A stretch of 64,000 nucleotides of DNA from the sequence record PP496444.1, one strand, 5' to 3'. A model generated the notes under the pieces. That model made no database searches and was not told the DNA's origin. It saw only the letters and a list, made by a program, of their open reading frames with translations. Shown piece by piece: positions 2,186 through 37,476 of the stretch. How positions within the stretch are numbered: the stretch's first letter is position 1; every line of letters starts with the position of its first letter. The translations under genes were made by a program, and so were the position numbers.

Positions 2186-2678
2186 TGGTGAACCCCTCAA
2201 GTGGGTATAGCGTAGCCGTGGACTTGTCCGGGTTGATCTGAATGTTCTCCGGGTTGACTTTCAGGTACTGCTTCAAGATCTTTTCGATCCGCAGCAAGTC
2301 AACGTCCTCTCCTTCCTTACTCTCTACCCACGGCAGCATCACGTAGGAGTACAGAGCGGGGTTGATCAGGACCACGTTGAAGAACGCAGTGATGGCATGG
2401 ATCAAGGTGTTGCCATCGTGTTTGTTGCTGGTCGGATCTCCTTCCTTGCTGCGGAGGATCACCTTGGGCTGGATAGTGTCGTAGGTGATGATCACCCCGA
2501 AACTGTCCGCCAAATCTGCTGGCACATTAACGCCTGCCGGGGCGCCGCGAGTCCAGAACGTAACGCGTGACTTGGTTCCGTCTGGGCGGTGGATTGTTGC
2601 CTTGGTGCAGTAGTCCGAGGACGTCCATAGGACCGGGTAGGTCGGCAGGATGTCCACCTGGGGGATAGACTTTATCAT
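2172..2678 (-). CDS. Hypothetical protein
   Basis: Co-oriented, overlapping operon gene; GAGG RBS before ATG 2678. Confidence 0.7.
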   Translation of the reverse strand: MIKSIPQVDILPTYPVLWTSSDYCTKATIHRPDGTKSRVTFWTRGAPAGVNVPADLADSFGVIITYDTIQPKVILRSKEGDPTSNKHDGNTLIHAITAFFNVVLINPALYSYVMLPWVESKEGEDVDLLRIEKILKQYLKVNPENIQINPDKSTATLYPLEGFTNENS

Positions 2679-2722
2679 GTTAGCCTCTAAGCCAACGGGG
2701 CCGCAAGGCCCCGTGCCGTTAT

Positions 2723-3868: not shown

Positions 3869-3869
3869 A

Positions 3870-4700: not shown

Positions 4701-4719
4701 TTGTGTATCTCCTAGGGAG

Positions 4720-5442
4720 TTATCGAGGGTAATTGTTCAGTCGGGAATCCAGAGCGCCCCAGTAGGAACTCAAGGGACCAGCGGATACACCGGTTGCGCC
4801 GGGCACATGCTTGCGCCGACCTTTACCGTTGCCACCCGCCTCACTACCGTCACCGTTGGTAATCCCTACCCGGTTCAAATAGGTCTTGATGCTCTCGACG
4901 TTCGCTTGAATGTAATCCATCACACTCTGATCCTGCGACTCGAGGTATTGCGTCATGTCCATGGTCAACTGGACCGCCGCGCCTTGGTAATCGAACTGGG
5001 TTCGACCTTCGTCCATGTACATCGTTCTCAGGGCGACGTGCTCCGCGTACTTGATCCACAGAGCATAGATGGCGCCTTGAGCGTTGATCATCGAGAACCC
5101 GGTAGGGATGACCGCACCGTTGAACATGTCCCGACCTGCTTTGAGGCAGTTCAGGTAGTCCTCATCCGTGAACGCCAAGTCATCCAGACGGAGCTTGCTG
5201 TTGATCCGATTGGTGAACTGTCGCAGCTCATCTATCGCCGTCAACATCGACGGATTGATCATATACAGCCTCTGTGTACTGTAATTAGTGCTGCCTTGCT
5301 GCTTGTACACCACCTGATAGGGCTCGAAGTTGGGCAGCAGGGTATTAGCGGGCAGCACGGCTGACACCTTCCCATTCGCTGCAACGTCGGCCACCAGTGA
5401 CGACCTCAGCAAGTTGTCGAAGTAAACCTCGATGTTGATCAT
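4720..5442 (-). CDS. Putative head-tail connector/neck protein
   Basis: Size, helical pattern (FTDEDYLNCLKAGRDMFN) and context; weak family recognition. Confidence 0.4.
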   Translation of the reverse strand: MINIEVYFDNLLRSSLVADVAANGKVSAVLPANTLLPNFEPYQVVYKQQGSTNYSTQRLYMINPSMLTAIDELRQFTNRINSKLRLDDLAFTDEDYLNCLKAGRDMFNGAVIPTGFSMINAQGAIYALWIKYAEHVALRTMYMDEGRTQFDYQGAAVQLTMDMTQYLESQDQSVMDYIQANVESIKTYLNRVGITNGDGSEAGGNGKGRRKHVPGATGVSAGPLSSYWGALDSRLNNYPR

Positions 5443-6596
5443 ACGGGAACCTCCGGAAGTGCCGTGGTCAGTTCAATCACCTTGACCGGGGTAAGCGGCT
5501 GCACCTCCTGACCAGTTGCCGGTGGGTTCTCAATCGTTACGTACGCTTCGGCGAAAGGTCCCAGCGGATACGCGGTGTAGTAGAGCGGAAGGGTGAACTC
5601 TGCGAGGGACGAACTGATCACCACGGAGAACATTCGATCCGTGAAGTCGATACCCGCATGCCCGGAGCCGTCTGGCGTATTGCGCAGCTGCACGCCCAGA
5701 GTATAGGGTTCAACCATCATATCTTGGCCTACGGAGTCCATCACCGTGACCTTGAGCACTTCATCACCGGGTGATACCTTACCGAAGGACAAGGACAAGT
5801 AACGTGGCACTTCTTCATCCTCATGTGGCGTTCGGGCAATCAGACGAGTGCGCTCATCCGGGATACCTGTACCGACGGGTGCCTTGAACGTGAGCATGGC
5901 GTGATCGACGATGCCACTGGTTGCAGGCGAACTGACGTCCACGTTCTGGCTTGGCAAAATCAAGGAGGCCGTGAGCTTGAACGCCGGGATGGTCACACTG
6001 CCTTGGATCGAGTCGATGTAGCCCGAATCTGCCGGGGCGTCACCGGCCACCACGGGCGGCAACTGTCTGGCCGTGTAGTTCAGCACCAGGTCCTTGGAAT
6101 AGAACTGAGACAGCGCCAGCGTCAACTGAAACGGTTGACCTCGAATGACTTCCTGCGTCGCCGGGGCAATCACTCGCAGAGTAGTCGTGCTGGCATCTTG
6201 CGCATCGGTGAACGCCAGTGTCGTGGACAGCTCCACGTCTTGATTGAACAGGGCCACCAGTACCGAAGATCCGCCTTGTTCAATGTCTACCGTGACATCA
6301 ATCTCCGTGGACCCGTCTTCATCGATGCCGACCAACTCATCCTTGAGGAAGAAGTCAATCGTCAGCGAGTCATAGCTGGTGTCTGGGATCACGACGTTAG
6401 CCGTAACCTTGACCCGGTAGCGATTCCCCGCTGGCAGCTTCTTGACGGACGTGACCAGTGCTGGTTCTTCACCGGCCAGCAGTGCACCGTCTTCATCGTT
6501 GACTGCGTAGTGCACGTGCAGGCTGTCGCTGGGTTGCTTGTCGATCAGGAAGGTGTAACTGAGTGGGACAGTATCACCTATGGTGTATGTCGTCAT
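5439..6596 (-). CDS. Beta-rich (Ig-like) putative virion protein
   Basis: Alternating hydrophobic beta-strand pattern, Thr/Val/Pro-rich; structural context. Confidence 0.4.
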   Translation of the reverse strand: MTTYTIGDTVPLSYTFLIDKQPSDSLHVHYAVNDEDGALLAGEEPALVTSVKKLPAGNRYRVKVTANVVIPDTSYDSLTIDFFLKDELVGIDEDGSTEIDVTVDIEQGGSSVLVALFNQDVELSTTLAFTDAQDASTTTLRVIAPATQEVIRGQPFQLTLALSQFYSKDLVLNYTARQLPPVVAGDAPADSGYIDSIQGSVTIPAFKLTASLILPSQNVDVSSPATSGIVDHAMLTFKAPVGTGIPDERTRLIARTPHEDEEVPRYLSLSFGKVSPGDEVLKVTVMDSVGQDMMVEPYTLGVQLRNTPDGSGHAGIDFTDRMFSVVISSSLAEFTLPLYYTAYPLGPFAEAYVTIENPPATGQEVQPLTPVKVIELTTALPEVPV

Positions 6597-7030
6597 TGGC
6601 CTGGCTCCGGTAATGCAAAGACAATGGGAACCTCATGTTCCTCGGCCAGATCATTCAACGAGTACCGCACCAGCTCCTTGAGCCAGCGATAGGTCTTGCC
6701 GTTGAAGTAGCGGTATCGGCCTTCGATCAGGGTTGGCGTGTAGTCGGAGTTCAGGTCAGCGATGATGGTGTCCGTCATGTCACCAGTGTCTTCCCGCACT
6801 TGGCGGACAAGGATGCTGTGAAGAACCCATACGTTGTTGCTGTTCTTGTTGTCACCCAGCAGGACTAACTCGTCTGTGGGCAGTGCCAGTCCCTGTGCCA
6901 GATAGGTGGACACCGGGGCATGCGTGGGTGACTTGGCAAACGTCAGGCCGGGTAACCCGAACGACAAGGTTGTCGTTAAACGCCTCAAGTACTGAGGGCG
7001 GGTCAACGGCTGCGGGGCGATCTTGATCAT
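6593..7030 (-). CDS. Hypothetical protein
   Basis: ATGA-type overlaps with both neighbours. Confidence 0.65.
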   Translation of the reverse strand: MIKIAPQPLTRPQYLRRLTTTLSFGLPGLTFAKSPTHAPVSTYLAQGLALPTDELVLLGDNKNSNNVWVLHSILVRQVREDTGDMTDTIIADLNSDYTPTLIEGRYRYFNGKTYRWLKELVRYSLNDLAEEHEVPIVFALPEPGQ

Positions 7031-19362: not shown

Positions 19363-19839
19363 ATGAAGAGTTTGATTCGACGCAAAGAAGGGTTTTACAC
19401 GGAGTTGTTGGCCGGTGCTAAAGACCCAGTGACCCTTTCCAAGACTGCATTCAACCGTGGACTGACCCGGATCGTTGCATCTATTACGAGCAGTGTGAAG
19501 CTGCGGTTCGTAGTAGATTCCGAAACCGGTGATGCGGAATACCGGGTGAGAGTGAAGTTCCAGAAAAGCCAGCTGACCCGCAAGGGAAGCCCGGCTATCA
19601 AGGTGGGGAGGGTACTGGTGCCCGTTGATCTTGACAGCATCGCAGTGCATTGCACATGTCAGGACTTTCGGTTCACCTGGTACACCTATTTGAAGAACGC
19701 GGGGCACGCTGCCGGTTGGTTCAAGCAGGTGGAGTTGAAAGGTTCTGGCCGCACTCGGGAAGCTGACCACGCAGGTTGCTGCAAGCACATCGCCGGTGTA
19801 CTGGCAATGGTTGAGCAGAACGTCATCGTCAAGCTGTGA
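19363..19839 (+). CDS. SWIM zinc-finger protein
   Basis: HCTCQDF...CCKHI (CxC...CxH) motif; AGGA RBS. Confidence 0.7.
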   Translation: MKSLIRRKEGFYTELLAGAKDPVTLSKTAFNRGLTRIVASITSSVKLRFVVDSETGDAEYRVRVKFQKSQLTRKGSPAIKVGRVLVPVDLDSIAVHCTCQDFRFTWYTYLKNAGHAAGWFKQVELKGSGRTREADHAGCCKHIAGVLAMVEQNVIVKL

Positions 19840-19874: not shown

Positions 19875-19910
19875 AAAACCCCGCCGGATTCGCGCCGTGC
19901 GGGGTTTTTT
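19875..19910. terminator. Bidirectional terminator between convergent genes
   Basis: AAAACCCCGC-loop-GCGGGGTTTTTT. Confidence 0.85.
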
Positions 19911-19927
19911 GTGTCTGCGATTCAGTC

Positions 19928-22900
19928 TTAGGCAAAGTCTTTACGTACCAGCACCAGCGGGACACCTATCTTTCTTTCTGCTATCTCAGTGAATTCCTTT
20001 AAGTCTTCAACGGACAAGGGGGCGTCGGTCATCATCCCATCATGCTCTTGGGCTATCAGTATGTCTTGGTGCTTGGTATTGAACTCTATCATCACGGCTT
20101 GCTCCATGCCGCATAGGATAAAGTGCATGGCCTTCCCTCGCTCACTCCTGTTGATCCATGCCCCTAGGTGTTTGTCCTGATAGAAGTAAGCGCGCTGCCC
20201 TATGGCGTTGACTAGCATCACGGCATGAGCCTTATCTTTCCCTTCCTCCTTGGTCTTATCCAGTTTCTTTCGCATGCTTGAACTACGTCGAGCGATCAGG
20301 TCTATGTTTATAGGCATAGCAGGGTGATCACTTTCTTTCGTATCAGGGTGCCGAAGGAACATACGAGTAAGGCTATCCACACACTGAACCACGGGATCAG
20401 CCAGCTCTTTTGCACATCCCATCAGTAGGTAAGAGAATTCCACCACTTTACACAACATCGCCGTCTTGGCGTTGGGGTGCATGTAGGGGAACTTCTTATT
20501 TGATTCGAACCAGCCTTCATATAGATCGTTAACCAGCTGCTTGAACACCCTAGACATGCGCAGTGATCCCAAACTGGTAGAAAGGTTAGAACCATACAAG
20601 GTGGATATGAATACTTTCTTACACGCGGACTGTAGAGTAGACACTCCATCATACCCTTGCTTGTTTAGTCTGACAGCCGCCAACCATTTACTCTGTCTAA
20701 CTGGTTCTTTGTTGGCTACCCTCCATTCTTCTGTTTCAGGGCAGCGTTCCCATTCGGCTCCAAATCTTTCTGCATGAAAATCTTTATCGAACGTTGTAGG
20801 TTCCCAGACGTCTTCAAATCCCCTATAGTCTTCGCTATTTACGCTCTGATAAAAACCAAAGTTGGAGTGTCTAGGGTCGCAATCATCCTCATCCTCGAAG
20901 ACGGCACGACCGTCCACAATGCGAAAACCATCCCCGTATTCACTTGACAGCCAATCGTACAGACTACCCATTCCAGAGTTAGTGGAGAACTCCCCAGCGG
21001 TGAAGAACATATACTCCATTGATGTCAGGAGTCCGGGGTGTTTAATCTCAACTAGGTTCAGCAGGTTTTCTACCCACCTCTTATTCAAGTAGCTATTGAA
21101 TACCTTATCCGCCTTTGCGATAACTGATTCCTCTACGTAGTGGTTAAGTCGGTCCTTGTACCGAGTAACCAAAGAATGGACGATCAGAGGATGACAGGAG
21201 GCTATGTCATAGTTGTAATACCCAGAGTCCTTCATAATGGCTTGCTTTATGCTACTGGGCAAGGCACTGAATCCGTTGGGCTGATACAGCCTTGGCGATC
21301 TAACTCGAATGACACAATCAGACTGATGGCTTACCCGAAGCTGATCTGATCTGTCTAGACTAGACTGAGTGCACCTAAGATTTTCTGGATTGGTTATCTT
21401 GTTCAACAGGAACATAACACTGGATACTGCCTGTGTTGACGCTTGCCGTTGGTAAGCTAAGAATGCGTCGAACAAACTATTCAGGTCTACTTCAACTTGT
21501 TTCTGGGTCAGCAGGGTTGCATACTGCTTAAGGCTTGGCGGGACACTGAGCCTTCCAGACAAATCGATACCCTCCGCAATTTCAGCATACGCAGGCTTAG
21601 TGTACGGCAGTCGGTTGCATAGGGCCGCACGTCGCATTAATACCTTAGCAGGTACCGGATGATCCACGGAGTGATATGTCTTTATGTGTTTTAGTCTAGT
21701 CCCCCTAGACTGTACTGTCCCGTCAGGGAGTTCTGAGGAGAAAACCATACACACGTCTCCACTTAGGGAGAAGGCGTATATGCCGTTTGGGATAAGTGTA
21801 TTCTCACCCACAAGGTTGGACGGCAATTGGGTGATCGTCATTTTTTGACCTGACATTACTCGTTGAGTATGTTTCCGCCATAGCCGATCAACTCTTGTCC
21901 TAGCTTCACTTACGAAGGAACAGATTGATTCCCCCATGCGAAAAGTCTTTGTCTTTCCTCGAAAGATATCGTGTTCCGTAACCAGCTTCATAATGCCCAT
22001 CTGGTCTAGGCATTTTAAGACGTCAGGCCATGCGTAGGTTTTCTTGTCTGATTGATCCCAATAGAATAAGCCTTCGAACCTGCGTTCCCCTTCTCTAGTG
22101 CCTAGCCCCCAACCCTCCCCCATGGTTGACCAATCCATTGTGTCGAAGTATTCGCCGCTTAGGTATCCTCCGTTATTCTCCAAGTAGCAGGCGACATCGA
22201 TTTTCCCTTCACGAGACTGATCATCCACCTGTTTATCCTCTCTCCATCTATTCCACTCGTAAAAGGCTCTGGCCCCCTCCAAGGTTAGGGGTAAGGTTAA
22301 CTTCACTTTGTCATTTTCTGTTATCGGTATGCCTTTTGATTCCTTCTCCCTGCACATAGCATTAGAATAGTAACCTCCAGTCATCATCTCATACATGGAG
22401 TTAATGGCGTTATCCGTGGGGGAGTCATAGACGGCCTCCCTACCTTTGAAGTATCGATCTAGTAGCACGGGAAACAAGACTACTAGACGGGAGATTATCA
22501 TGGCTAGTCCGTAACAACAGTTCGATCTGGGGGTGTACCCTCTAGCCGCCATGCGAATAACCAGTTCCTCATACGCGTCTAGAATGTAGTATCCCAACTC
22601 GGGGGTGACGACGGTAGGAGATCCGATCACTTTTGTATCTAGCCAGCACTTCCCATTAGCCAGTAGATTCTCCGAAGCATCAAGCGAAGGTTTAATGACG
22701 TGGCTACGGATCAGGGGGACTGACGTCTGAACTAAGGGTAAGTCGTCAGTTACTGCTTTGGCTTCCGGGAAGTGGCGGATGTAGGTAGCCATCGAGTCTA
22801 ACAATGCCTGGCTGGGATACCCACGGCTGGGATATTTCACATCGGGAATCAGACCAGCTAATGCCTTTATAACTTGAGGATTTCGGTAACACGAGAATAC

Positions 22901-22960
22901 ATAATCAGGATTGCGCACCATATCAGCATGGGGCATATCGGATATATAGGAGTAGATCAT
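19928..22960 (-). CDS. Large protein with C-terminal family-A/TV-Pol-like nucleotide polymerase domain
   Basis: SPRLY..NGFSALP (motif 2-like), YNYDIASCHP (motif A), CKKVFISTLYG (motif B), QEHDG (motif C); visibly more AT-rich than flanks. Confidence 0.6.
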   Translation of the reverse strand: MIYSYISDMPHADMVRNPDYVFSCYRNPQVIKALAGLIPDVKYPSRGYPSQALLDSMATYIRHFPEAKAVTDDLPLVQTSVPLIRSHVIKPSLDASENLLANGKCWLDTKVIGSPTVVTPELGYYILDAYEELVIRMAARGYTPRSNCCYGLAMIISRLVVLFPVLLDRYFKGREAVYDSPTDNAINSMYEMMTGGYYSNAMCREKESKGIPITENDKVKLTLPLTLEGARAFYEWNRWREDKQVDDQSREGKIDVACYLENNGGYLSGEYFDTMDWSTMGEGWGLGTREGERRFEGLFYWDQSDKKTYAWPDVLKCLDQMGIMKLVTEHDIFRGKTKTFRMGESICSFVSEARTRVDRLWRKHTQRVMSGQKMTITQLPSNLVGENTLIPNGIYAFSLSGDVCMVFSSELPDGTVQSRGTRLKHIKTYHSVDHPVPAKVLMRRAALCNRLPYTKPAYAEIAEGIDLSGRLSVPPSLKQYATLLTQKQVEVDLNSLFDAFLAYQRQASTQAVSSVMFLLNKITNPENLRCTQSSLDRSDQLRVSHQSDCVIRVRSPRLYQPNGFSALPSSIKQAIMKDSGYYNYDIASCHPLIVHSLVTRYKDRLNHYVEESVIAKADKVFNSYLNKRWVENLLNLVEIKHPGLLTSMEYMFFTAGEFSTNSGMGSLYDWLSSEYGDGFRIVDGRAVFEDEDDCDPRHSNFGFYQSVNSEDYRGFEDVWEPTTFDKDFHAERFGAEWERCPETEEWRVANKEPVRQSKWLAAVRLNKQGYDGVSTLQSACKKVFISTLYGSNLSTSLGSLRMSRVFKQLVNDLYEGWFESNKKFPYMHPNAKTAMLCKVVEFSYLLMGCAKELADPVVQCVDSLTRMFLRHPDTKESDHPAMPINIDLIARRSSSMRKKLDKTKEEGKDKAHAVMLVNAIGQRAYFYQDKHLGAWINRSERGKAMHFILCGMEQAVMIEFNTKHQDILIAQEHDGMMTDAPLSVEDLKEFTEIAERKIGVPLVLVRKDFA

Positions 22961-23051
22961 GGTATAAATCCTATGGAATTCAACCCTATTTACAGAACTA
23001 CCTTTTGCAGAAAAGTCGGGAAAGTCCTAAAGGTCCCTATCTGTGTTAACT

Positions 23052-23099
23052 TAACGGATATAGAGGTGTATACCTACAATCCCTACCCTATATCCGTTA
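23052..23099. repeat. Perfect 12-bp inverted repeat (hairpin/cruciform)
   Basis: TAACGGATATAG (23052-23063) and CTATATCCGTTA (23088-23099), 24-nt spacer. Confidence 0.85.
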
Positions 23100-23203
23100 T
23101 TCAGTCCCTACTGGGATACCTCGAGCTGCGGTAACTCGATCCCACGGTGCGCCCCACCCGGTCCGATCGAGGCCATACCGCAGGTATCCTAGCTTACCTT
23201 TTA

Positions 23204-23359
23204 CTCCCCAGCTTCCTTTCCTTCCTTCATATGCTCCCCAGCTTCTACATAGGCAGTTAGTTCCTCCCATGCCTCTAGTCCTCCAGCTTCCTCATGCACT
23301 TATGCTCTGTAGTACTGATTCCCCACATGCCTGTGAGTTATGCTCTGTAGTCAGGATTC
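23204..23359. repeat. Iteron-like direct repeats in a non-coding region
   Basis: CTCCCCAGCTTC at 23204 and 23234, degenerate copy at 23264 (30-bp period); TTATGCTCTGTAGT at 23300 and 23338. Confidence 0.7.
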
Positions 23360-23574
23360 CAGCCTCCCAGGTGAAAAGGGTAGTCATGTACTGGGCATTC
23401 GTCCGGGGAATAGCGCCCGTGAATAGGGCTTCCAGGCGTGCGATATGGGGAGTTTTCCGGGTATGGATGAGTCAGTATGGCGGGGGATGGGGATCGAAGC
23501 GCCTGCGAGCTTGTAGGAGCCCGTGGTTATTGGCTGGATATGCGGGACTGGGGCGGGGGTTTCCTGCGGAGGTG

Positions 23575-23608
23575 AAAAAGCCCGCACGGCTTGGGACCGA
23601 TACGGGCT
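23575..23608 (-). terminator. Intrinsic terminator
   Basis: AGCCCG...CGGGCTTTTT on the minus strand after the 23615 gene. Confidence 0.7.
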
Positions 23609-23614
23609 CTGGTG

Positions 23615-24112
23615 TTACTTGCGCATCTCTATTGTTGGCTTCTTGGCATCGGGGTTCGGACGGGGTTTCGGTGCGTCCGTCTGCGTACTGCCCATCCGAT
23701 GGCTCAGGATGACCTCGTACAGCTCGCCGCCCGGCTTCAACGTGTCGGGGTTCTCAGTATGCAGCACCGCGATCAGATCCATGATGTCCGTGTTGTGTCC
23801 CAGCTCCGCCGACGGTATCATCTGGAATTCCTGATTCACGCCGGGGATCGGATCTTGCGGTCGGTACAGCGCCACCACCCTGCCTTTGCCCGGCTCGGCG
23901 CCCAGCTTGCTGTCGTCTCGCCCCACCCACATCTCACGTGCGCCCGGCACACTGGCTGGCACGTGTTCAATAGAACCTTTCGGGTAGTGCGCGGAGAAGG
24001 TGGCGGTGAACCACCGCAGACTGCCTTTGTAGCAGCGGAACGGTTTGACCTCTCTGGCGTGGCGGGTCAGCGGGTTATTCAACGGTGTAGAGTGTTCGAC
24101 GATCAGTGACAT
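23615..24112 (-). CDS. Hypothetical protein
   Basis: GAGGA RBS; last gene of an early operon. Confidence 0.7.
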   Translation of the reverse strand: MSLIVEHSTPLNNPLTRHAREVKPFRCYKGSLRWFTATFSAHYPKGSIEHVPASVPGAREMWVGRDDSKLGAEPGKGRVVALYRPQDPIPGVNQEFQMIPSAELGHNTDIMDLIAVLHTENPDTLKPGGELYEVILSHRMGSTQTDAPKPRPNPDAKKPTIEMRK

Positions 24113-24124
24113 GATGTGTTCCTC

Positions 24125-24661
24125 TTAGTATTTCTTGCTGGCTTGCCGCACGAACGTGAGTGGCTCGAAAGGTGGTCTCTCAAACCACGATACCGGATTT
24201 CCGCGCTGCAATCCCTGCGACCACCCGGCATAGAAGTCTTCCTTAACCGAGGACTGACGGCGGTTGGTGATCTCAATGCGTCCGGTTGTCATCAGCGTCT
24301 TGATGTCCACGAAACCCGCACGCTCAACCTCGATGTCAACTTTGCTCCAGTGCTCTTTCGTCTTGGCGAAGTCGGACACGGCTTTCGGCTTGAACAGTTT
24401 CTTGTCGGTGAAGTACACGGCGGGATTGTTGATCTTACCCAGCTTCCTGTCGGCTTTGCTGGTATGATACACGGCCTCTCTAACTACGCTGCCGATATCT
24501 GCGGCGCCGATACGTGCACCCAGACACTGCCATACGGTTGGGGAGAAGCACACGCGCAGCGTCTTGGCGCATTCCTCGTGATTCCTCCCGGATGGCACCT
24601 TGGCTTTCAGGGTGACGTGCTTGCCAATGTCTTTTTCAGACACGTGATAAAAGCGTGGCAT
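24125..24661 (-). CDS. Putative ADP-ribosyltransferase-fold protein
   Basis: FYHVS, RVCFSPT, D..KTKEHW: spacing resembling an H-S-E ART core. Confidence 0.4.
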   Translation of the reverse strand: MPRFYHVSEKDIGKHVTLKAKVPSGRNHEECAKTLRVCFSPTVWQCLGARIGAADIGSVVREAVYHTSKADRKLGKINNPAVYFTDKKLFKPKAVSDFAKTKEHWSKVDIEVERAGFVDIKTLMTTGRIEITNRRQSSVKEDFYAGWSQGLQRGNPVSWFERPPFEPLTFVRQASKKY

Positions 24662-24708
24662 GGTATTCCTCTTGGGATAGTGGTGCGCCGTCCGTGGCGC
24701 GTTGTCGC

Positions 24709-24870
24709 TTAGTTGATGGCCGGGAATTCGATCAGCAAATCCTTCACCTCTTGCACCGACAGCGGCAAGCCGGTGATGGGGTGGATGCGCTCGTCCCGGA
24801 TAATATCACGCAGCCGCTGGCGCTGCTCACGGGGCGTCTGTGGTTTGCTGGTGGGTTTGCATGATGGCAT
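24709..24870 (-). CDS. Small protein, 53 aa (MPSCKPTSKPQTPREQRQRLRDII...)
   Basis: Manual translation; first ORF after a sigma70 promoter; below the ORF-track cutoff. Confidence 0.55.
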   Translation of the reverse strand: MPSCKPTSKPQTPREQRQRLRDIIRDERIHPITGLPLSVQEVKDLLIEFPAIN

Positions 24871-24916
24871 GGTATGGCTTCCTATTGGACAGTGGGCGGC
24901 ATTGTGCCGCGTGGGT

Positions 24917-24946
24917 ATGATAGCAGATGGGAATCATTCGTGTCAA
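24917..24946 (-). promoter_or_regulatory. Sigma70-type early promoter
   Basis: TTGACA-18 nt-TATCAT on the minus strand. Confidence 0.7.
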
Positions 24947-24965
24947 CACCCGACCGGCACAGGTG

Positions 24966-24999
24966 AAAAAGCCCACGCAGCGGTTAGGCAGGTGGGCTT
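24966..24999 (-). terminator. Intrinsic terminator
   Basis: AAGCCCAC...GTGGGCTTTTT on the minus strand. Confidence 0.8.
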
Positions 25000-25003
25000 G
25001 AGA

Positions 25004-25276
25004 TCAAACGAGTTGCAGTGTCGGCGGTGGCTTCACACCTAAGTCAATGACGATGTGCAGTTCAAGATCTAGTGCCAGTCGAATCGAATCCGAGTATGGC
25101 TCTCTGGTCCACGCCCAGACATCGGGTAACGACGTGCGGTAGATATGAGCCACGGTTATCTTCCACCGCTCCGGTGCATTCTTATCTCCTACATGCTTTC
25201 GGAACTGCGGGGTGAGGAAGGCGATCAACGACTCGTACGTACCTTCCCACACCATAACCTGATTATTCCGGGACAT
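25004..25276 (-). CDS. Small hypothetical protein (paralog of 26233-26565)
   Basis: Shares W.G..ESL.AFLT and V..WTR motifs with the 26233 ORF. Confidence 0.7.
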   Translation of the reverse strand: MSRNNQVMVWEGTYESLIAFLTPQFRKHVGDKNAPERWKITVAHIYRTSLPDVWAWTREPYSDSIRLALDLELHIVIDLGVKPPPTLQLV

Positions 25277-25667
25277 GAGGACCCACCTTGTTGGTCAGTA
25301 CCCAGCCGATACTCAGGACCAGACGTGGCCCGTGGCAAAGAACTCGGTGACGGTTGATGTCGGGACGGAACAGATTGAAGCGCCCCTTGATCTTGGCTTC
25401 GGGACATTGGAACGCGGACGTTGATCCCTTGAGCACGATATTCAACCGCCAGTGCCTCTTGCCTTCCACCGGATCAACGTGCCACGCGATGCCTTGCTTG
25501 TCCATGTACCGGATCAGGTATAAGTCACCCGAGCGCCATTGGAACAGCAGCATCTTGTGGTACTGCCCTGCACGACCTTGAACCCACTTGGGCCAGTTCA
25601 TCAACGCTCTACCTGTACTGACTCGATGGCAATGATCTCGGCGCCGATGAGTAGGCTCTTCAGCCAT
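25263..25667 (-). CDS. Hypothetical protein (true start probably at MNWPKW)
   Basis: Co-oriented early-cluster ORF. Confidence 0.55.
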   Translation of the reverse strand: MAEEPTHRRRDHCHRVSTGRALMNWPKWVQGRAGQYHKMLLFQWRSGDLYLIRYMDKQGIAWHVDPVEGKRHWRLNIVLKGSTSAFQCPEAKIKGRFNLFRPDINRHRVLCHGPRLVLSIGWVLTNKVGPHVPE

Positions 25668-26227
25668 TCTTCCCCACGCTCGTCTCCGTCCTCGACCTTA
25701 GTGTCTCCCATCATAATGAATGGGCACTCGTTGTGCACCTCGAGCCGGTCGTAGACCATACCAACCGCAGAGTCGATGATATCCCAACCGGTGCAGTTGC
25801 CACCGATCTTAACTTCCATGACAGCACGGAGCAACCCGAATGCGAAGGTCAGCCGTACGGTCTGGAAGCAATTGCCCATCGTGTAGTACTTGCCCATCTG
25901 TTCGTGGTCATAGTTCAACAACCCAGAGGGTACTGGTTTAACCGTCGGCTCTTTGTAGGGTTTGATTTCCTTCTGAAGCAGGATACCTACCTCGGAGTCT
26001 TTCGAGTTCTTGTCTTTGATGGTGGCTCGGTACACTGTGTCTGTGTCCGTATTGTAAACACCCACCTTATCCCTCATCACTGTAATAGACGGCACAGTGG
26101 ACCAGATGTACTCTTTGCAATGAGCTTGATCTGGGAAAGCGATACCGACGGACTTACCTTCTACAATGACCAGCCATGGGCACGGACCGGGATGGGGAAA
26201 GCGAAGGGTCTTTTCATTAGTGGTCAT
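25601..26227 (-). CDS. Hypothetical protein
   Basis: GAGG RBS, co-oriented early cluster. Confidence 0.65.
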   Translation of the reverse strand: MTTNEKTLRFPHPGPCPWLVIVEGKSVGIAFPDQAHCKEYIWSTVPSITVMRDKVGVYNTDTDTVYRATIKDKNSKDSEVGILLQKEIKPYKEPTVKPVPSGLLNYDHEQMGKYYTMGNCFQTVRLTFAFGLLRAVMEVKIGGNCTGWDIIDSAVGMVYDRLEVHNECPFIMMGDTKVEDGDERGEEWLKSLLIGAEIIAIESVQVER

Positions 26228-26232
26228 GGTTC

Positions 26233-26565
26233 TTACCTCGATGGGACAGGATGGTTGATGGGGTTCACCAGTTTAAGACCGGGTGAACTGGCATTCAGAC
26301 GTGGTATCGGGTTGATGGTCATCTTGGTCAGTGGCTTCAACCCCAGCACGCGGACTACATCTTCCGGCAGCTCGGCACGGGTCCAGATAACCACGTTGTC
26401 CGACACCGTTGACCACACGTGAATCGGCAGATCGTTGATGGCACGCGCTTCCACCTTGTTCACGGTCTTCAACCGGTCCAGTGCTTCCTTGGTCAGAAAG
26501 GCGGTGAGTGATTCGACGTTGCCCAGCCAGGTCATGGTGGGAATGTTGCGGTTCGCAGTATTCAT
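26233..26565 (-). CDS. Small hypothetical protein (paralog of 25004-25276)
   Basis: See paralog. Confidence 0.7.
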   Translation of the reverse strand: MNTANRNIPTMTWLGNVESLTAFLTKEALDRLKTVNKVEARAINDLPIHVWSTVSDNVVIWTRAELPEDVVRVLGLKPLTKMTINPIPRLNASSPGLKLVNPINHPVPSR

Positions 26566-26864
26566 TGGTCAATCCCTTGATCGAGCGGCATGGAGAGGTG
26601 AGCTATGGCCGAGTTCAGCCAGATGATGCGGTTGTTGTAGCGCTGCTTGAGACGGCCGCTCGGTGGGTTATTACCTTGCAGCACCCCGCACATACGATTC
26701 AGCTCACAGCGGAGGGAAGCAATAGCCTGATCAACATGGATGTGCTCAGGATTAGAGTTCTCTTTGCTCATGTATCTTTCCTTTATTGCGGTTGGGTCAA
26801 TGCAGATTCGAGTTTCTTGTAGCAGGCTGCGACGATGCCTTTGGACATGCGGTCGGGCAACCAT
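26562..26864 (-). CDS. Small hypothetical protein (start uncertain)
   Basis: Co-oriented; likely start at MSKENS. Confidence 0.5.
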   Translation of the reverse strand: MVARPHVQRHRRSLLQETRICIDPTAIKERYMSKENSNPEHIHVDQAIASLRCELNRMCGVLQGNNPPSGRLKQRYNNRIIWLNSAIAHLSMPLDQGIDQ

Positions 26865-27151
26865 GAGTTCTGGAGCATCATATGACTGTAGTGGAACAGA
26901 TCACCTTGGAGCAACAAGTCGGACAGCTCCATACGATTGGCCAGATGGGTGGAGTATTGCTCATCATTAAGATCCACCATCTTCGGACCCCATGTGGCAA
27001 TCACGGCATTGAGATTGTCAGGAACGACGGCCAATGTCAGCACCGTCTCACCCTTCACGACACGCAACCCGGCCAGCGTCTTGCTCACATATCGTTCTAG
27101 AGTGACGCTCATGTGTCTTCCTTCCCTAGCTGGACATTCACACCTTGCCAC
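26783..27151 (-). CDS. Hypothetical protein (likely start MSVTLER)
   Basis: Co-oriented early cluster. Confidence 0.6.
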   Translation of the reverse strand: MARCECPAREGRHMSVTLERYVSKTLAGLRVVKGETVLTLAVVPDNLNAVIATWGPKMVDLNDEQYSTHLANRMELSDLLLQGDLFHYSHMMLQNSWLPDRMSKGIVAACYKKLESALTQPQ

Positions 27152-32529: not shown

Positions 32530-34008
32530 ATGAAATCTGTAGCCATTGATTACCAAAAGATAGCCAAGGAGTGCCAGTGCACAGAGCTGCCGCCACGGGT
32601 AAGAGTAACCCGTGCACGGGTCTATCCAAACCTGAGGACGTGCCTACTCTATCTCAAGTACGATGCCAAAGGTGAACTGGTGCAAGCCGAGATCACCGCG
32701 CCGTACGACACATCCACCGAGCCAAAGGTGCGTGTGCTCAAACACCCGGACAAGAAGTCGGAGTTCCTTTCATTATATAGGGCGCTGATCCGCCACCAGA
32801 TTATACCGGAGTCGATACCGAAGAAAGGTAACGGCATTGCCCCGACGCTGGAGGTCATCGGTACACTGGTCAGTCTGCTGCCGGGGCGTGACGTTGAAAC
32901 CTTCCGCACGCTGACCCCGGCCATCCAGACCGGTGGTGTCATATACGTGCCACTGGTTACCTCGCGTCCGATGCCGATGGTGCAACACTGGATACCTGTC
33001 AGCCAGCATTCAGAGCTGGGGATGATCGAACTCATTGACACCGACAGCAAGCCTCTACTGAACCAGTGGATCAACAGGTTGAGCAACACGGCCACCGGCT
33101 ATGTGATCTACACGCCGGACGGTTCGCATGCACAGGAACTCCTCTGCTTCCGCGTACCCAACGTGCAAGGTGAGGAACTGTGCGTAGTCAAGAAGGTGGA
33201 CTTCACGCTGACCGTGGCCCGCAGTCTCAAGCCAGTGCTGACCGTATCGACCAAGAGCACGCGTGCCGTGTCCCGCATCCCCCTGCCACATTACCTGATG
33301 CTGCGCAATCACCACATCAAGGTGGGTACCGTGATCTCGCTGCGCCGTAACGACCGGGGCGGGCTGGTGTACCATGAGACGGTAGCGGAGGAAGGCATGA
33401 CACCCTTGCCTCTCTGCCCCTACTGTCACAGCGGATCTGTGCTGCTTCCCGGCAACAACGACGTGTACTGCAAGAACGACTCCTGCCGTGGCCTTGCCAA
33501 CGTGCGCCTGCACTACGTCTTGAACAACAAGCTGGATGTCAAGTACCTGAGCAACACCAAGGTGACAGCGCTGATCAACGACAAGCAGGACCTGTTCACC
33601 CTGCTCAAGACACCGACTCACCTACTGCGACACAGACCGGGCTTCGGTGCACGTACGGTCGATGCACTGGAGAAGAAGCTGGACAGCATTGCAAGTCTTC
33701 CGCTGCATACGCTGGCCGAACTGTCCTGCGCCTTCTACAACGTGGGCGTGCCCCCACTGGATGAGATGGTGTTCAAGAAGATCTTTTCCATCATGTCACT
33801 CGACTACCTGAAAGCGCTGCCGTCCACTGGCAAGATGTACAGTCAGTTGCTCGACATCGAAGGTATCCGCAACAACCGCGCAGTGGCTTTCCTAGCGGGT
33901 TGGCCTGCCTTTCAACAGTGGATGCTAGACCTGGATGCTGCCCTACAATCTCGCAGCGCAGTCTCCACCACGGTAAATAGCCCAAAACAAATTCGAGGTG
34001 TGCAATGA
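32530..34008 (+). CDS. NAD-dependent ligase (LigA) paralog, predicted catalytically inactive
   Basis: LigA-like architecture: LKYDAKGELVQA, YTPDG, OB fold (LKPVL, IKVGT), CPYC..C.N..C zinc finger, HhH (GFGARTV, IEGIR); KxDG replaced by NLRT and TRGDG lost. Confidence 0.7.
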   Translation: MKSVAIDYQKIAKECQCTELPPRVRVTRARVYPNLRTCLLYLKYDAKGELVQAEITAPYDTSTEPKVRVLKHPDKKSEFLSLYRALIRHQIIPESIPKKGNGIAPTLEVIGTLVSLLPGRDVETFRTLTPAIQTGGVIYVPLVTSRPMPMVQHWIPVSQHSELGMIELIDTDSKPLLNQWINRLSNTATGYVIYTPDGSHAQELLCFRVPNVQGEELCVVKKVDFTLTVARSLKPVLTVSTKSTRAVSRIPLPHYLMLRNHHIKVGTVISLRRNDRGGLVYHETVAEEGMTPLPLCPYCHSGSVLLPGNNDVYCKNDSCRGLANVRLHYVLNNKLDVKYLSNTKVTALINDKQDLFTLLKTPTHLLRHRPGFGARTVDALEKKLDSIASLPLHTLAELSCAFYNVGVPPLDEMVFKKIFSIMSLDYLKALPSTGKMYSQLLDIEGIRNNRAVAFLAGWPAFQQWMLDLDAALQSRSAVSTTVNSPKQIRGVQ

Positions 34009-34829
34009 GCAAGAACAAAGGAACACGTACCGCCGTGCTGGTCGGTGGAGGTTTGGACTCCCACGCATACATGGTGTTGAACGCTGATCGAGCGCAGACA
34101 GACTTCATTCATGTGGACTACGGCCAGCGGGTTGCAGTGGCCGAGAGAAACGCCGTGCTGCACATGGCCGAGAAGCTGGGCATTGCCCGCAGTCGTGTGT
34201 ATACGTTGATCTGCGGCAAGACGAACCACATGCGCAAAGTCAACGAAGGCGTCGGCGTGTTGTTCGGCACTGGCCCGGTCGAGATGGACAACGCGTTCGT
34301 GAAAGGACGCAACCTGTTCCTGATTCAGAAGGCCATCGAACTGGGGCATGGTCACGTGCACTTGACGTTGACGCAAGAACGTGGCCGGATGTTCCCCGAT
34401 GCCGATCTGGGATTCGTCCAGCTGGTGGACAATCTGATGCACCGCAGCTACGACGTGAGAGTTACTGCGCCCTACATCATGGAAGACAAGCATCGGGTGA
34501 TGTTCAAGGCGTATCGCCACTGCCCCGAGTTCATCGACATGTCTTTCACGTGCTGGGTCGGCCCTCATGTAGAGTGCGGCATGTGCCCCCACTGCGTCAA
34601 GAAGGAAAAGATTAAAGCCGAGATGGTTATCCAGAAAGCTGAGTACGATCTCAACAAGGATACCCGAGAGGTGCAGTGGGAACAAGTCAAAGCAGGCTAC
34701 GGCAGTGCATTGAAACCAAGCAGTGTTCAAATCTGTGAAGGAATAGCTGCACGTACGGATGAGGCATTAGTTTCATCTCCTATCCGTAGCCCTGATCAGG
34801 CCATGATCAAATCGATCCGAGGTAATTGA
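34005..34829 (+). CDS. QueC-family PP-loop ATP pyrophosphatase, paralog 1
   Basis: VGGGLDS, DYGQR..E, FVKGRNL, FPD..GF, APY...K, TCW...CGMCPHC. Confidence 0.85.
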   Translation: MSKNKGTRTAVLVGGGLDSHAYMVLNADRAQTDFIHVDYGQRVAVAERNAVLHMAEKLGIARSRVYTLICGKTNHMRKVNEGVGVLFGTGPVEMDNAFVKGRNLFLIQKAIELGHGHVHLTLTQERGRMFPDADLGFVQLVDNLMHRSYDVRVTAPYIMEDKHRVMFKAYRHCPEFIDMSFTCWVGPHVECGMCPHCVKKEKIKAEMVIQKAEYDLNKDTREVQWEQVKAGYGSALKPSSVQICEGIAARTDEALVSSPIRSPDQAMIKSIRGN

Positions 34830-34830
34830 C

Positions 34831-35598
34831 ATGAAAAAGTTCGCCAGCTGGTTCAAGCGTCTGCTGAGTAAGAAGCCCAAGTCGATCACGATGACGATGA
34901 CAGACGCCGGTGGCAAGTTGATCACCATTCACATACCACAAGGTGCGGGTGTCGAATACACTCTGTCGAAGTCGGGTACCCACTTGAACGTCTCGGTCAA
35001 GGACGACATCTTCGTACTGAGCACGAACGGTGGTGGAGGTGGTGGGAGCGGCGGTGGTTCCAGGCCTGGTGTCAATGGTGGCCCCGGTCATACGCCCGTG
35101 TATCCGCGCCAAACCGCCCCAGTGGGTGCAGGCGCTCCGAACGCGGGTTGCGCTGGGGATGCACCGAGTGGAGCAGGTGTAACGCCACCAGTGGGCGGAC
35201 AAGCATCGTTTCCTATTGGCGCCCGAGTAACCGTATCAGGTGGTGGCCGGTGTAGTGGTCTGGCGGGTGACGGGCGTGAACGTAAAGAACTCGGGGGTGG
35301 CCCCGGTCCCGACGGAGACAGCTTCGTCGCATCCCCCATTCGCAGTAGTGACCGAGCCTACATGATCCGAGGCTTGTACTACGTCATCACGACCCGCAAG
35401 ATAACAGGCGAGGAATATCCGATCCACGAACTTCTGCACTGGGGCAAGAAGAGCATCGAACTCATGGGCAAGTTCCACACAGTTCGAGATGCTATCGACG
35501 AACTCAAGAAGCAGCTGGGTATCGTGTTAGACGATATTACGGACTATCAGGTTGAATCCATCCCCAAACGCATGTGCAAGCCCCCGCGTAAACCTTGA
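34831..35598 (+). CDS. Gly/Pro-rich hypothetical protein between the two QueC paralogs
   Basis: Basic amphipathic N-terminus, NGGGGGGSGGGS tract, shared VxSPIRSxDxA motif. Confidence 0.7.
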   Translation: MKKFASWFKRLLSKKPKSITMTMTDAGGKLITIHIPQGAGVEYTLSKSGTHLNVSVKDDIFVLSTNGGGGGGSGGGSRPGVNGGPGHTPVYPRQTAPVGAGAPNAGCAGDAPSGAGVTPPVGGQASFPIGARVTVSGGGRCSGLAGDGRERKELGGGPGPDGDSFVASPIRSSDRAYMIRGLYYVITTRKITGEEYPIHELLHWGKKSIELMGKFHTVRDAIDELKKQLGIVLDDITDYQVESIPKRMCKPPRKP

Positions 35599-35636
35599 GC
35601 GGGTAAATGGCTCGTAACTAATCCGGAGACATCAGC

Positions 35637-36455
35637 ATGAACGCTACACCGCCAAAGATCCTTATCGCATTCAGCGCTGGCACAGATTCAACGACAGCGG
35701 CCTACTACTACCGAGGTCTTGGGTATCAGGTAACGCTGGCTGTGTTTGACGATGGCCCCTGCAACGACCCGCAGAGCCCATTGTACGATCCGAGCAAGCC
35801 GGAAGACCTGACCAACTTCTCGGATGAGTTCTACGACTACGTGCGACTGCATCAGGATCACACTGCCCGGCACTTGCAGTTCGACTTCGTTGAGATGCGC
35901 TATCCGCAGCTTCCGTTGCTGGAAGCCAACAAGACGGCCAAGCCCGGTCGGGACAACGCAGCGGCAGCAGAGGCTGATGGCTTGGGGTTCTGGGTCGGCT
36001 TCAAAGGCCTGATGGCAATGATGCTGATGAGCCACGGTGCGGCCAACGGCTACGAGGCTGTGGTCTTCGGACACATGCCGTACAACAGCCATTACGAAGA
36101 TGAGCTGCCCCAGAACTTCGAGCTGCTGCGCCAGTACATGGTTACGGCCTACGGTAGCCGGGTAAACATCCCCCACATCTACCACCCGTTCTACCGCCCC
36201 AACTTCGATACCAAAGAAAAGGTTATCCAGCTGGCGTTGAACATCGGTGTGCCCCTGCGAGATACTTATTCGTGCCGCCGAGGTGAAGTGGAAACCCGAG
36301 GCGTTCTCCTGCCACTTCTTCGTGGTGGTAAATCCAGCTATGTGAATCCCACCTACCGCTGGAAGCATTGTGGTACTTGTGAGAACTGTGTCGAACGCAA
36401 GCGAGCCTTCGCGGCGCTGGGCATGAAAGACCCTGCCCCTTATATGGAACATTGA
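35637..36455 (+). CDS. QueC-family PP-loop ATP pyrophosphatase, paralog 2
   Basis: FSAGTDST, YED..PQNF, HPFY..TKEKVI, TYSC..HCGTCENCVERKRAF..G..DP..Y. Confidence 0.85.
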   Translation: MNATPPKILIAFSAGTDSTTAAYYYRGLGYQVTLAVFDDGPCNDPQSPLYDPSKPEDLTNFSDEFYDYVRLHQDHTARHLQFDFVEMRYPQLPLLEANKTAKPGRDNAAAAEADGLGFWVGFKGLMAMMLMSHGAANGYEAVVFGHMPYNSHYEDELPQNFELLRQYMVTAYGSRVNIPHIYHPFYRPNFDTKEKVIQLALNIGVPLRDTYSCRRGEVETRGVLLPLLRGGKSSYVNPTYRWKHCGTCENCVERKRAFAALGMKDPAPYMEH

Positions 36456-36456
36456 T

Positions 36457-37476
36457 ATGGCCCTTTCAATCTGGCCGCTGACCGAGGAAGAACTCGGTCA
36501 GAACCTAGTCAACGAACTGAATCGTACCAGCAAGGCGCTGGTTAACCGGCGTATGTGGTCTTTGCCACTGCTCCGGCGTTTGTTTTATCGGCGCACTGAG
36601 ATCGGTGTACCGGAACTGCTTCACGTCTGTTCCTCCAATTATCGGGGCCAGATTTACTTCTGCCTGCTTGTGAACTACCGAGACGTGGTGATGGGGAACC
36701 CTGAGCAATACGGCTGGGATCTCGCTGGCCGGTGGTTGTTCTACGACGTGGATCTGTTGGATACCCCGGAGTTTAAGAAGGTTAAGCACGCCATCGGACA
36801 AGCTGCCCCTGTGATTACTGATGTGTCTTATGGTCAAGCATTCGTCCCAGATGAAGGTGGTATGGGGGACGAGCACTGGATCAAGAAACTGAAAGGTAAC
36901 TACCGCCCTCACATTTTCGGCGAAAAGTCAAAACAGGTTATAGTCAGTCAGACCTGTGGTATGGCAGCTACTCATGTGCTGACTGAGGCGGTAATGTCAT
37001 TCGGTATCCAGCGCGCCGAAAGATTCATCGCGGAAGGTCAAGCGGATGTCATGCCAGAGTTGTACGACCTACCCATGCAGCTGGCCGGGCTAGGGTCTAT
37101 ACCTGGAACCCGGATCGGCACCGTTTCACTCACCTGCCGGGATACCCGTGCACTGATCGGAACCTTGTCGTTCTACGTTGTGGCAGGTTTGGGTCACAGC
37201 GACATCATGTACATGCACGAGATGCTGATCGATCCTGATCCGAAGTGGAAGCCTCTGTCGGTAGCGGTCAACTTGCACATCCAGGCAATCATGTACGTGC
37301 GACATCTCAACGACCGATCCAATCAGAGTGCTGACTTGGTGATCAACCTCGGATTCAACTTGGACGAGAAGTATAACACCTACAAAGAGGTGTTCCGTCC
37401 GAACAAGTCAGAGATGGAAATCTACACCGGCATGCACACCGAGCCGGGTATTCCACTGTCCTGTTTCAAGGGGTAA
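36457..37476 (+). CDS. Fem/BioF2-like GNAT acyl/aminoacyltransferase 1
   Basis: WIKKLKGNYR helix; C-terminal INLG...YKEVF signature. Confidence 0.5.
   Translation: MALSIWPLTEEELGQNLVNELNRTSKALVNRRMWSLPLLRRLFYRRTEIGVPELLHVCSSNYRGQIYFCLLVNYRDVVMGNPEQYGWDLAGRWLFYDVDLLDTPEFKKVKHAIGQAAPVITDVSYGQAFVPDEGGMGDEHWIKKLKGNYRPHIFGEKSKQVIVSQTCGMAATHVLTEAVMSFGIQRAERFIAEGQADVMPELYDLPMQLAGLGSIPGTRIGTVSLTCRDTRALIGTLSFYVVAGLGHSDIMYMHEMLIDPDPKWKPLSVAVNLHIQAIMYVRHLNDRSNQSADLVINLGFNLDEKYNTYKEVFRPNKSEMEIYTGMHTEPGIPLSCFKG

Follow-up and report, generated by a model that had tools for sequence, protein, structure and literature searches.

We analyzed a 64,000-nucleotide stretch of sequence record PP496444.1, referred to below as the window (window coordinates are record coordinates minus 124000), from Pseudomonas phage vB_PpuM-Peetri (Peetri), a 200-kb jumbo myovirus whose host is Pseudomonas putida. 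The gene of interest, Peetri_00163 (protein WYW02751.1), lies at 19928..22960 on the minus strand; the open reading frame (ORF) list, the translation and the annotation gave an ATG start and 1010 amino acids (aa) followed by a stop codon. It is labeled 'hypothetical protein' in the record, and the original prediction, made from the DNA sequence alone, regarded it as a candidate polymerase with a TV-Pol-like core. Peetri_00163 has its own transcription unit: the upstream gene 00164 ends in a terminator-like hairpin (~23572-23606), and the Peetri_00163 start codon is preceded by 655 nt of non-coding DNA. Downstream, the order is a small opposite-strand gene (00162) and then the genes for an ATPase, a virion protein, the major head protein and the tail sheath. 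A second terminator-like hairpin (19889-19903) lies between the convergent genes 00162 and 00163.

The protein contained an ordered series of motifs. The hairpin-Arg motif was found at residues 554-568 (RSPRLYQPNGFSALP), motif A with D585 at residues 581-591 (YYNYDIASCHP), motif B at residues 780-791 (CKKVFISTLYGS) and motif C with D974 at residues 970-975 (AQEHDG). The motifs quoted in the original prediction were all present in the order given there and, upon pairwise alignment, all were kept in the 31%-identical allele carried by eight sister phages. In particular, R557, D585, H590, K781, Y789, G790, H946, G951, H973 and D974 were the same in both alleles, as was C950, which sits in motif 6 (C950-G951). 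The motif 6/C region was 63% identical between the alleles compared with 31% overall, and it was the best-conserved part of the protein.

Several parts could be delimited, all encoded on the minus strand. The N-terminal region (residues 1-488; 21497..22960) had no family match and contained neither a Walker A nor a D.E motif. Residues 525-601 (21158..21388), delimited using hhalign against profiles of presumed TV-Pol proteins (TV-like profiles, described below), comprised the presumed end of the thumb, R557 within RSPRLY, the segment IKQAI and motif A (YNYD585IASCH590P). Alignment gaps revealed an acidic insertion in the presumed fingers (residues 671-774; 20639..20950) that was mostly missing from the 928-aa sister allele and in which Asp and Glu made up 23% of the residues, compared with 12.7% overall. 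Motif B, which is O-helix-like and includes K781, Y789 and G790 (residues 775-801; 20558..20638), was matched by PolA, T7 RNA polymerase (RNAP) and TV-like profiles. Residues 937-985 (20006..20152) carried motif 6 (ER..MH946FILCG951MEQA) and motif C (AQEH973D974G), as found with a 13-sequence TV-like profile and with the C-terminus of the Vibrio phage protein GR7B_00126. The last part (residues 986-1010 and the stop codon; 19928..20005) contained a C-terminal helix and strand, ended in GVPLVLVRKDFA and aligned with the end of GR7B_00126; in a forced alignment, the C-terminus also resembled the PolA C-terminal block VPL.VE..G..W.

The original prediction had seen no exonuclease or helicase motifs, and motif and family-library scans agreed with it: a Walker A motif was lacking, residues 1-520 contained no D.E motif, and neither half matched a Pfam, NCBIfam or PHROG family. 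An HD-domain hydrolase, for which the H...HD pattern was considered, was ruled out by the lack of a downstream Asp and of a Pfam HD match. A family B polymerase, considered for the patterns D..S..P and K....S..YG, was ruled out by eye on generally known motif features of families A and B; the conserved Lys-to-Tyr spacing and the HD of motif C fit family A.

To reach known proteins, we used TV-Pol as a bridge. Microcystis phage Ma-LMM01 is reported to carry an integrated element that encodes a TV-Pol (Iyer, Abhiman and Aravind 2008, PMC2579912). The Ma-LMM01 protein MAP_030, which was picked before any comparison with Peetri_00163, is 505 aa long and carries the motifs GLRVY...NFREVLL...VNYDVVKCHA, KTAVLAVINGA and NNQHDG. 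Its gene adjoins two genes annotated as transposases, which we take to be of the IS605 type. A tblastn search from MAP_030 led to two small plasmids that encode relatives, Polaromonas pH8NP1 and Calothrix plasmid6, and a search from the pH8NP1 protein revealed a further relative on Polaromonas pW9NP1. A resolvase or recombinase gene was present on each of these three plasmids, which matched the description of TV-Pol (PMC2579912). The two Polaromonas proteins (WP_181374945 and WP_181377809) contained the motifs SGRLYAHNVNLQNAYRPVRQAAL..YDYDIENCH, VKQALLALIYGAS, ERQLMAHLLQGVES and LLQHDGF. The D...HP and HDG motifs that the original prediction had assigned to TV-Pol recurred, as VNYDVVKCHA and NNQHDG in MAP_030 and as YDYDIENCH and LQHDG in the Polaromonas proteins. 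The resulting TV-like reference set, chosen from context and motifs as presumed TV-Pol, consisted of proteins of 480-620 aa, which fits the published description of the family (PMC2579912). RefSeq names the pH8NP1 protein (5287-6789 of the compared stretch) 'Clp protease N-terminal domain-containing protein'; the Clp_N match on which this name is based was sub-threshold (19.9 bits against a cut-off of 20.7) and lay inside the presumed fingers, and the name is probably a misannotation.

Comparison of the target profile with these references gave significant similarity. With MAP_030 alone, hhalign gave P=2.3e-4, and with a HMMER profile of the MAP_030 family, both alleles ranked within the top 0.2% when compared with 1000 shuffles. 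Against a 10-sequence TV-like profile, the target scored 49.5 (Prob 72%, P=3.3e-5), while 120 column-shuffled controls had a mean of 17.3, a standard deviation (SD) of 2.6 and a maximum of 27.3, and the reversed sequence scored 16.0; the target was thus more than 12 SD above the shuffles. Addition of three jumbo-phage members yielded the 13-sequence profile, to which the target showed three collinear matches on the catalytic motifs: residues 525-601 with columns 201-283, covering the hairpin Arg and motif A (Prob 85%, P=5.9e-6); residues 778-801 with columns 310-333, covering motif B (P=0.10; 0.06-0.10 over the TV-like profiles); and residues 937-985 with columns 390-438, covering motifs 6 and C (P=0.0028). 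The profile stayed at 13 sequences because scans for more TV-like proteins added no new relatives: genome contigs yielded none, and IMG/VR yielded only near-identical relatives of the Ma-LMM01 protein. In these alignments the putative hairpin Arg R557 (RSPRL in one allele, RSPRI in the other) lay in one aligned block with GLR or SGR of the TV-like references, and the putative catalytic pair D585 and D974 aligned with the Asp residues of NYD and QHDG. Outside the motifs, residues 489-550 aligned with residues 177-225 of MAP_030, the presumed thumb region, where helices were seen only in low-confidence models, and residues 309-356 were collinear with the N-terminal domain of TV-like proteins in a match that was not significant (P=0.18).

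The connection to family A was made through the two Polaromonas proteins. Compared with a PolA domain profile of 70 sequences (relatives of Peetri's own polymerase and T7 gp5), this pair gave one 196-column alignment that begins at motif 2 and extends to the columns of motif C (Prob 60%, P=8.5e-5), with a score of 41.3 against a shuffle maximum of 25.0. Judged by their motifs, the Polaromonas proteins look intermediate between PolA and the target. We transferred residues from the target to the Klenow fragment through this chain of alignments, using the Klenow residue numbering. The hairpin Arg R557 corresponded to R668 and the motif A Asp D585 to D705, while H590 occupied the position of the steric gate E710. 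In motif B, K781 and Y789 corresponded to K758 and Y766. In motif 6, H946 was found at the position of N845 and C950-G951 at that of Q849-G850, and in motif C, H973-D974 corresponded to H881-D882. The Arg of the RxxxK motif (Klenow R754) had no counterpart in the target.

We also found TV-like genes in other jumbo phages. The nearest relatives of Peetri outside its genus are the Vibrio phages vB_VcorM_GR7B and GR11A (PolA 48% and ATPase 40% identical). Their genes GR7B_00126 (4740-6593 of the compared stretch; 618 aa, 'hypothetical') and GR11A_00066 (3007-4857) lie in the replication module, between a Rep-type helicase gene and an RNase HI gene; in one Vibrio phage the distance to the helicase gene is 1.6 kb. 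GR7B_00126 matched the TV-like profile strongly (Prob 97.6%, P=3e-12). The C-terminal part of the Vibrio proteins showed weak similarity to the motif 6/C region of the target (P=0.027 for GR7B alone and 0.0029 for the Vibrio pair), and the short tails were alike, with ...KLIEKPFA in GR7B_00126 and ...KDFA in the target. Erwinia phage pEa_SNUABM_32 encodes a further TV-Pol-like member, the 525-aa gp223 (4260-5834 of the compared stretch). All three are labeled 'hypothetical protein', none of these jumbo-phage genes is annotated as TV-Pol-like, and none matched Pfam. TV-Pol-like genes thus recur in jumbo myoviruses.

Peetri encodes a separate replicase. Its family A polymerase, Peetri_00222, is 1087 aa long and includes a 3'-5' exonuclease domain (Pfam E=2e-38), and the phage also encodes a Toprim (DnaG-type) primase, a DnaB-like helicase, a clamp loader, SSB, ligases and RNase H. 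This supported the earlier view that Peetri_00163 is not the main replicase; since the phage already has a PolA replicase, a DnaG-type primase and DnaB, Peetri_00163 would be an accessory enzyme.

From the sequence comparisons, we consider Peetri_00163 a probable relative of the TV-Pol branch of family A polymerases, divergent and unusually large, that would act as an auxiliary enzyme beside the replicase. According to the alignments, residues ~490-1010 would form the polymerase core in a right-hand fold, in which the helical end of the thumb is followed by a hairpin bearing R557. In the palm, D585 of motif A would bind metal and H590 would stand where Pol I has its steric-gate Glu. The fingers would be enlarged by the acidic insertion and would present K781 and Y789 on the O-helix; motif 6 (H946 and G951), motif C (H973-D974) and a C-terminal strand would then follow. 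The first ~490 residues would form an accessory domain, and the enzyme would lack a proofreading exonuclease. If active, it would copy a DNA template by the two-metal mechanism, using dNTPs or NTPs; the sugar of the substrate could go either way because His replaces the steric-gate Glu. Its auxiliary role may lie in starting or restarting phage DNA synthesis rather than in bulk replication. We infer this priming or initiation role by analogy, because a full replisome is present, because the Vibrio gene lies between the Rep helicase and RNase HI genes, and because the characterized TV-Pol, CcPol-MP, is a primase-polymerase.

A number of results weigh against this assignment. The target did not match PolA directly with significance (hhalign P=0.34), and with a HMMER PolA-domain model its score was within the range of shuffled copies. 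The best local match to the PolA profile fell exactly on motif B (K781...Y789-G790), and a position-specific scoring matrix test with automatically chosen PolA blocks also singled out motif B (p~0.001), the other blocks not being significant. For the remaining blocks, the positions given in the original prediction ranked 1st (motif C), 2nd, 4th and 22nd of 672; the best spacing-constrained motif chain ran exactly through those positions, yet with p~0.09. By themselves, the direct comparisons with PolA and T7 RNAP would amount to no more than a suggestion of a polymerase. The pooled TV-like profile did not match PolA significantly either (P=0.075-0.2), so that the PolA link rests on the Polaromonas pair, and MAP_030 is presumed to be the published Ma-LMM01 TV-Pol by its context and motifs rather than by an accession number. 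Of the originally proposed TV-Pol-like core, the match to TV-Pol-like proteins proved to be beyond chance and led to family A through the Polaromonas proteins, while a direct tie to PolA was not significant.

Standard searches and structure prediction likewise gave little help. The target family profile consisted of only two sequences (Peetri and the sister allele), and a HMMER profile scan of 1.84 billion representative proteins returned only these two alleles. A word-based search of 5.8 billion proteins found no homologs beyond them, and no relatives of the target were found in IMG/VR or metagenome contigs. Pfam, PHROGs, NCBIfam and PADLOC gave no matches for the whole protein or for either half (Pfam even at E=10), and sequence searches of the PDB with the profile and with the C-terminal half found nothing relevant. 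AlphaFold2, run on full-length Peetri_00163 with the two-sequence alignment, reached a predicted local distance difference test (pLDDT) score of 33, and a run on the last 548 residues of the allele of the sister phage KoPa-5 reached 39.6; Foldseek searches of both low-confidence models against the PDB returned only helical-bundle noise. Further points concern the gene and its surroundings. The Arg of RxxxK was absent, four positions before K781, where Peetri has Q777 and KoPa-5 an Asp. Within 12 kb on either side, the annotation showed no D5-like helicase, resolvase, integrase or transposase gene. No SSB-like or OB-fold, helicase or recombinase partner was recognized beside the target, as genes 00162, 00164 and 00165 had no informative family matches.

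To see how far Peetri_00163 resembles the family, we compared it with the published description of TV-Pol, represented by MAP_030, WP_181374945, WP_181377809, the Calothrix plasmid ORF, GR7B_00126, GR11A_00066 and pEa_SNUABM_32 gp223. TV-Pol is described as a globular protein of ~400-600 residues with an absolutely conserved hairpin Arg before the palm, two catalytic Asp residues in an RRM-like palm, RxxxK in the fingers, a thumb formed by a two-helix antiparallel coiled coil, and no fused or linked exonuclease (PMC2579912). It is linked or fused to a D5-like helicase, or else has a TV-PolN domain and resolvase, integrase or transposase neighbors (PMC2579912). The target shared with the presumed TV-Pol set a significant profile similarity, the ordered motifs (the hairpin Arg, (N/D)YD..(C/S)(H/Q), K....(Y/N)G, H..(Q/C)G.E and (Q/E)HDG), the absence of an exonuclease domain and of Pfam coverage, and its presence in a large phage with its own replicase. 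In contrast, at 1010 aa (928 in the sisters) it is about twice as long as the references, with ~300 extra N-terminal residues and fingers insertions of ~90-150 residues. Moreover, it is fixed at one locus across a phage genus rather than carried on a small mobile element, and Gln or Asp stands where RxxxK has Arg. By sequence it is related to TV-Pol and would work in a similar way, yet we file it as a variant rather than a typical member because its size, the RxxxK arginine and its helicase and recombinase neighbors differ from the family description.

CcPol-MP of SCCmec is a dNTP-using primase-polymerase (Bebel et al. 2020, PMC7581432; also Rice 2022 preprint), and as of 2020 CcPol was the only TV-Pol with any biochemistry (PMC7581432). 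It resembles the target in having an A-family-type catalytic core that works outside bulk replication, and it is a model for the priming role. Among the differences, the target has His at the Pol I steric-gate Glu position. By description only, CcPol also differs in that it needs an adjacent small OB-fold partner, MP, and lies in an operon with a helicase, neither of which was recognized beside the target. As judged from transitive alignment, the family A polymerases (Pol I/Klenow, T7 gp5 and Peetri_00222) have their motifs in the same order as the target and share key residues with it. The target differs from them in having no significant direct similarity, no Pfam DNA_pol_A (PF00476) match, no exonuclease domain and no RxxxK Arg, as well as His for the steric-gate Glu, Cys for the motif 6 Gln, and much longer A-to-B and B-to-C spacings.

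Peetri_00163 could instead be a single-subunit RNA polymerase in function, comparable to T7 RNAP or N4 RNAPII, which would use NTPs to make transcripts or RNA primers. The overall size, the large N-terminal accessory domain, the long inter-motif spacings, YGS in motif B and HD in motif C are features in common with T7-like RNA polymerases. Measured from R557 to its end, the core is 453 aa long, and motifs B and C are 193 residues apart; both values are closer to T7 RNAP, with a core length of 458 and a B-to-C spacing of 181, than to Pol I. The best local match to T7 RNAP was motif B, with LYGS in the target compared with AYGS, and it was the only part matched by a T7 RNAP profile of low diversity (identity >= 62%), without significance (P=0.23). 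No specificity loop or other promoter-recognition element was recognized in the target. The replacement of the steric-gate Glu by His590 and the position of the gene, which heads the block of structural genes as its own transcription unit, are compatible with an RNA polymerase. No phage RNA polymerase is annotated in Peetri; a sigma factor is, which suggests that the host RNA polymerase is used. RNA-priming activity has been proposed for ancestral TV-Pols (Iyer et al., PMC2579912), whereas the sole characterized TV-Pol prefers dNTPs (PMC7581432). We regard an RNA polymerase function as improbable on balance.

It also seems quite unlikely that Peetri_00163 is a polymerase-derived pseudo-enzyme, which might serve as a scaffold, a DNA binder or a counter-defense decoy. 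Such a role would explain the fast divergence and the allele swap, given that the alleles are 31% identical compared with 90% for the flanks, that the fingers carry large insertions, and that this region of the genome varies within the genus; host prophages strongly restrict G3 phages, which would be consistent with an arms race. The lack of the RxxxK Arg, a residue that in both Pol I and T7 RNAP makes contact with the incoming nucleotide, points the same way. However, MAP_030 and the two Polaromonas proteins have no Arg at this position either, so that the target shares this lack with at least these relatives and it is not a decay specific to the target. Moreover, although only 31% identical, the two alleles have retained both Asp residues, the Lys and Tyr-Gly, the His and Gly of motif 6 and the hairpin Arg, and conservation is highest in the catalytic C-terminal part. 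A coincidental resemblance, with an unrelated fold and function, would agree with the two-sequence profile and with the lack of a significant direct match to PolA, Pfam, PDB, PHROG, NCBIfam or any structure, but it is very improbable given the TV-like score far above the shuffles, the three collinear matches exactly at catalytic motifs, the independent selection of the same motif B segment by the PolA and T7 RNAP profiles, and the recovery of the originally predicted motif positions by a chain search with unconstrained positions.

We then compared the locus across the genus. The gene was at the same position in all nine phages (9/9), and the homolog in the eight sisters (KoPa-5, Lauda and others) is 928 aa long and has ~31-32% protein identity to the Peetri allele, compared with ~90% identity in the flanking DNA. 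In blastn and window-by-window alignment, DNA similarity to KoPa-5 was interrupted between about the stop codon and window position 23238; a breakpoint 200 nt inside the 3' end, read from blastn, was dropped since the window-by-window alignment placed it around the stop codon. Peetri has therefore swapped the resident gene and ~280 bp upstream for a distant, AT-richer homolog by recombination. The composition of the gene had been described as more AT-rich than the flanks with many CTAG words, and this was borne out: the GC content was 47.6% compared with 55.4% for the remaining window, and CTAG occurred 19 times (6.3 per kb), about 8-fold richer than in the remaining window (0.75 per kb). Outside the gene the window avoids CTAG (46 seen, 77 expected from trinucleotides), and the gene does not (19 seen, 15 expected). 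A low-GC island extended over ~19900-23200, around the gene. GATC is common in Peetri, at ~20 per 3 kb. The Lauda homolog has the normal GC content of its genome, and the low GC was seen only in Peetri. The gene is an old resident of the genus, and because a homolog sits at this locus throughout, Peetri gained no new gene but a distant replacement. The original description of the gene as acquired thus holds for the Peetri allele, which came in, and not for the gene itself. A donor of this allele was not found in any of the collections searched (protein sets, IMG/VR and metagenome contigs).

The upstream non-coding DNA consisted of two parts, both taken on the minus strand. The part adjoining the gene (22961..23237), delimited by blastn breakpoints, arrived with the foreign allele and showed no similarity to KoPa-5; it contained two inverted repeats, a perfect 12-nt one (23052-23063/23088-23099) and another at 23111-23121/23182-23192. 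The following part (23238..23614) was 92% identical to KoPa-5 by blastn and contained two 23-nt direct repeats (23300-23322 and 23338-23360), and 12-nt repeats were also found in 22961-23614. Two unannotated ORFs lie in the conserved part, one of 147 aa at 23269-23712 on the plus strand, overlapping the end of gene 00164, and one of 67 aa at 23384-23587 on the minus strand. An unusually long non-coding stretch (0.65-1.1 kb) preceded the TV-like gene in 4/4 phages examined (Peetri, KoPa-5, GR7B and GR11A), at 22961-23614 of the window in Peetri and at 1992-3000, 3989-4740 (GR7B) and 1920-3007 (GR11A) of the compared stretches. No convincing iterons were found in these four regions, and Rfam and tRNA scans of the window gave nothing. 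The stretch may serve in regulation or as an origin.

Other observations concern the neighborhood and the phage. Peetri_00162 (19363-19839, plus strand), which showed only a weak hint of a SWIM zinc finger (E=0.009), is conserved beside the target, and its counterpart GR7B_00128 adjoins the ATPase gene in Vibrio phage GR7B. The small genes upstream of the target, at 24100-27000, form a variable region of the genus, in which 49-62% of a 9-kb query was common to the sisters; Lauda has an acetyltransferase gene there and Peetri has none. QueC-like genes (Peetri_00183 and 00185) lie at ~34000-36500 of the window, and the genome outside the window includes QueE-like and GTP cyclohydrolase genes, which suggests 7-deazaguanine modification of the phage DNA. 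The genus is restricted >1000-fold by P. putida prophages, and Peetri is its only phage reported to lyse P. syringae B728a (10.1101/2024.03.26.586772). Peetri is also the only member with the foreign allele; the lysis of P. syringae B728a is a single coincidence and not evidence for a link.

A wider extension of these findings is tentative and unlikely to hold. TV-Pol-like enzymes may be a second polymerase that recurs in jumbo myoviruses (Pseudomonas G3 phages, Vibrio GR7B and GR11A, Erwinia Alexandravirus and Microcystis Ma-LMM01) and has been overlooked; the Peetri type would start synthesis of DNA, or of RNA-primed DNA, de novo at the upstream non-coding stretch. The gene and this stretch would then be a self-contained, exchangeable origin-initiator cassette, perhaps under pressure from host defenses that sense the replication machinery, and exchange of such a cassette between phages would be what happened in Peetri. 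For the annotation of jumbo phages, a large orphan gene gains a name, and the small profile can annotate others. Peetri and KoPa-5 provide two natural alleles of 31% identity in a phage background that is ~90% identical, which makes them apt for swap and mutant tests in P. putida PaW85, a safe laboratory host. The presence of unannotated TV-Pol-like genes in replication regions of several jumbo phages with complete replisomes raises the question of what purpose a second polymerase serves, for which origin priming, restart, copying of modified DNA and RNA synthesis are candidates.

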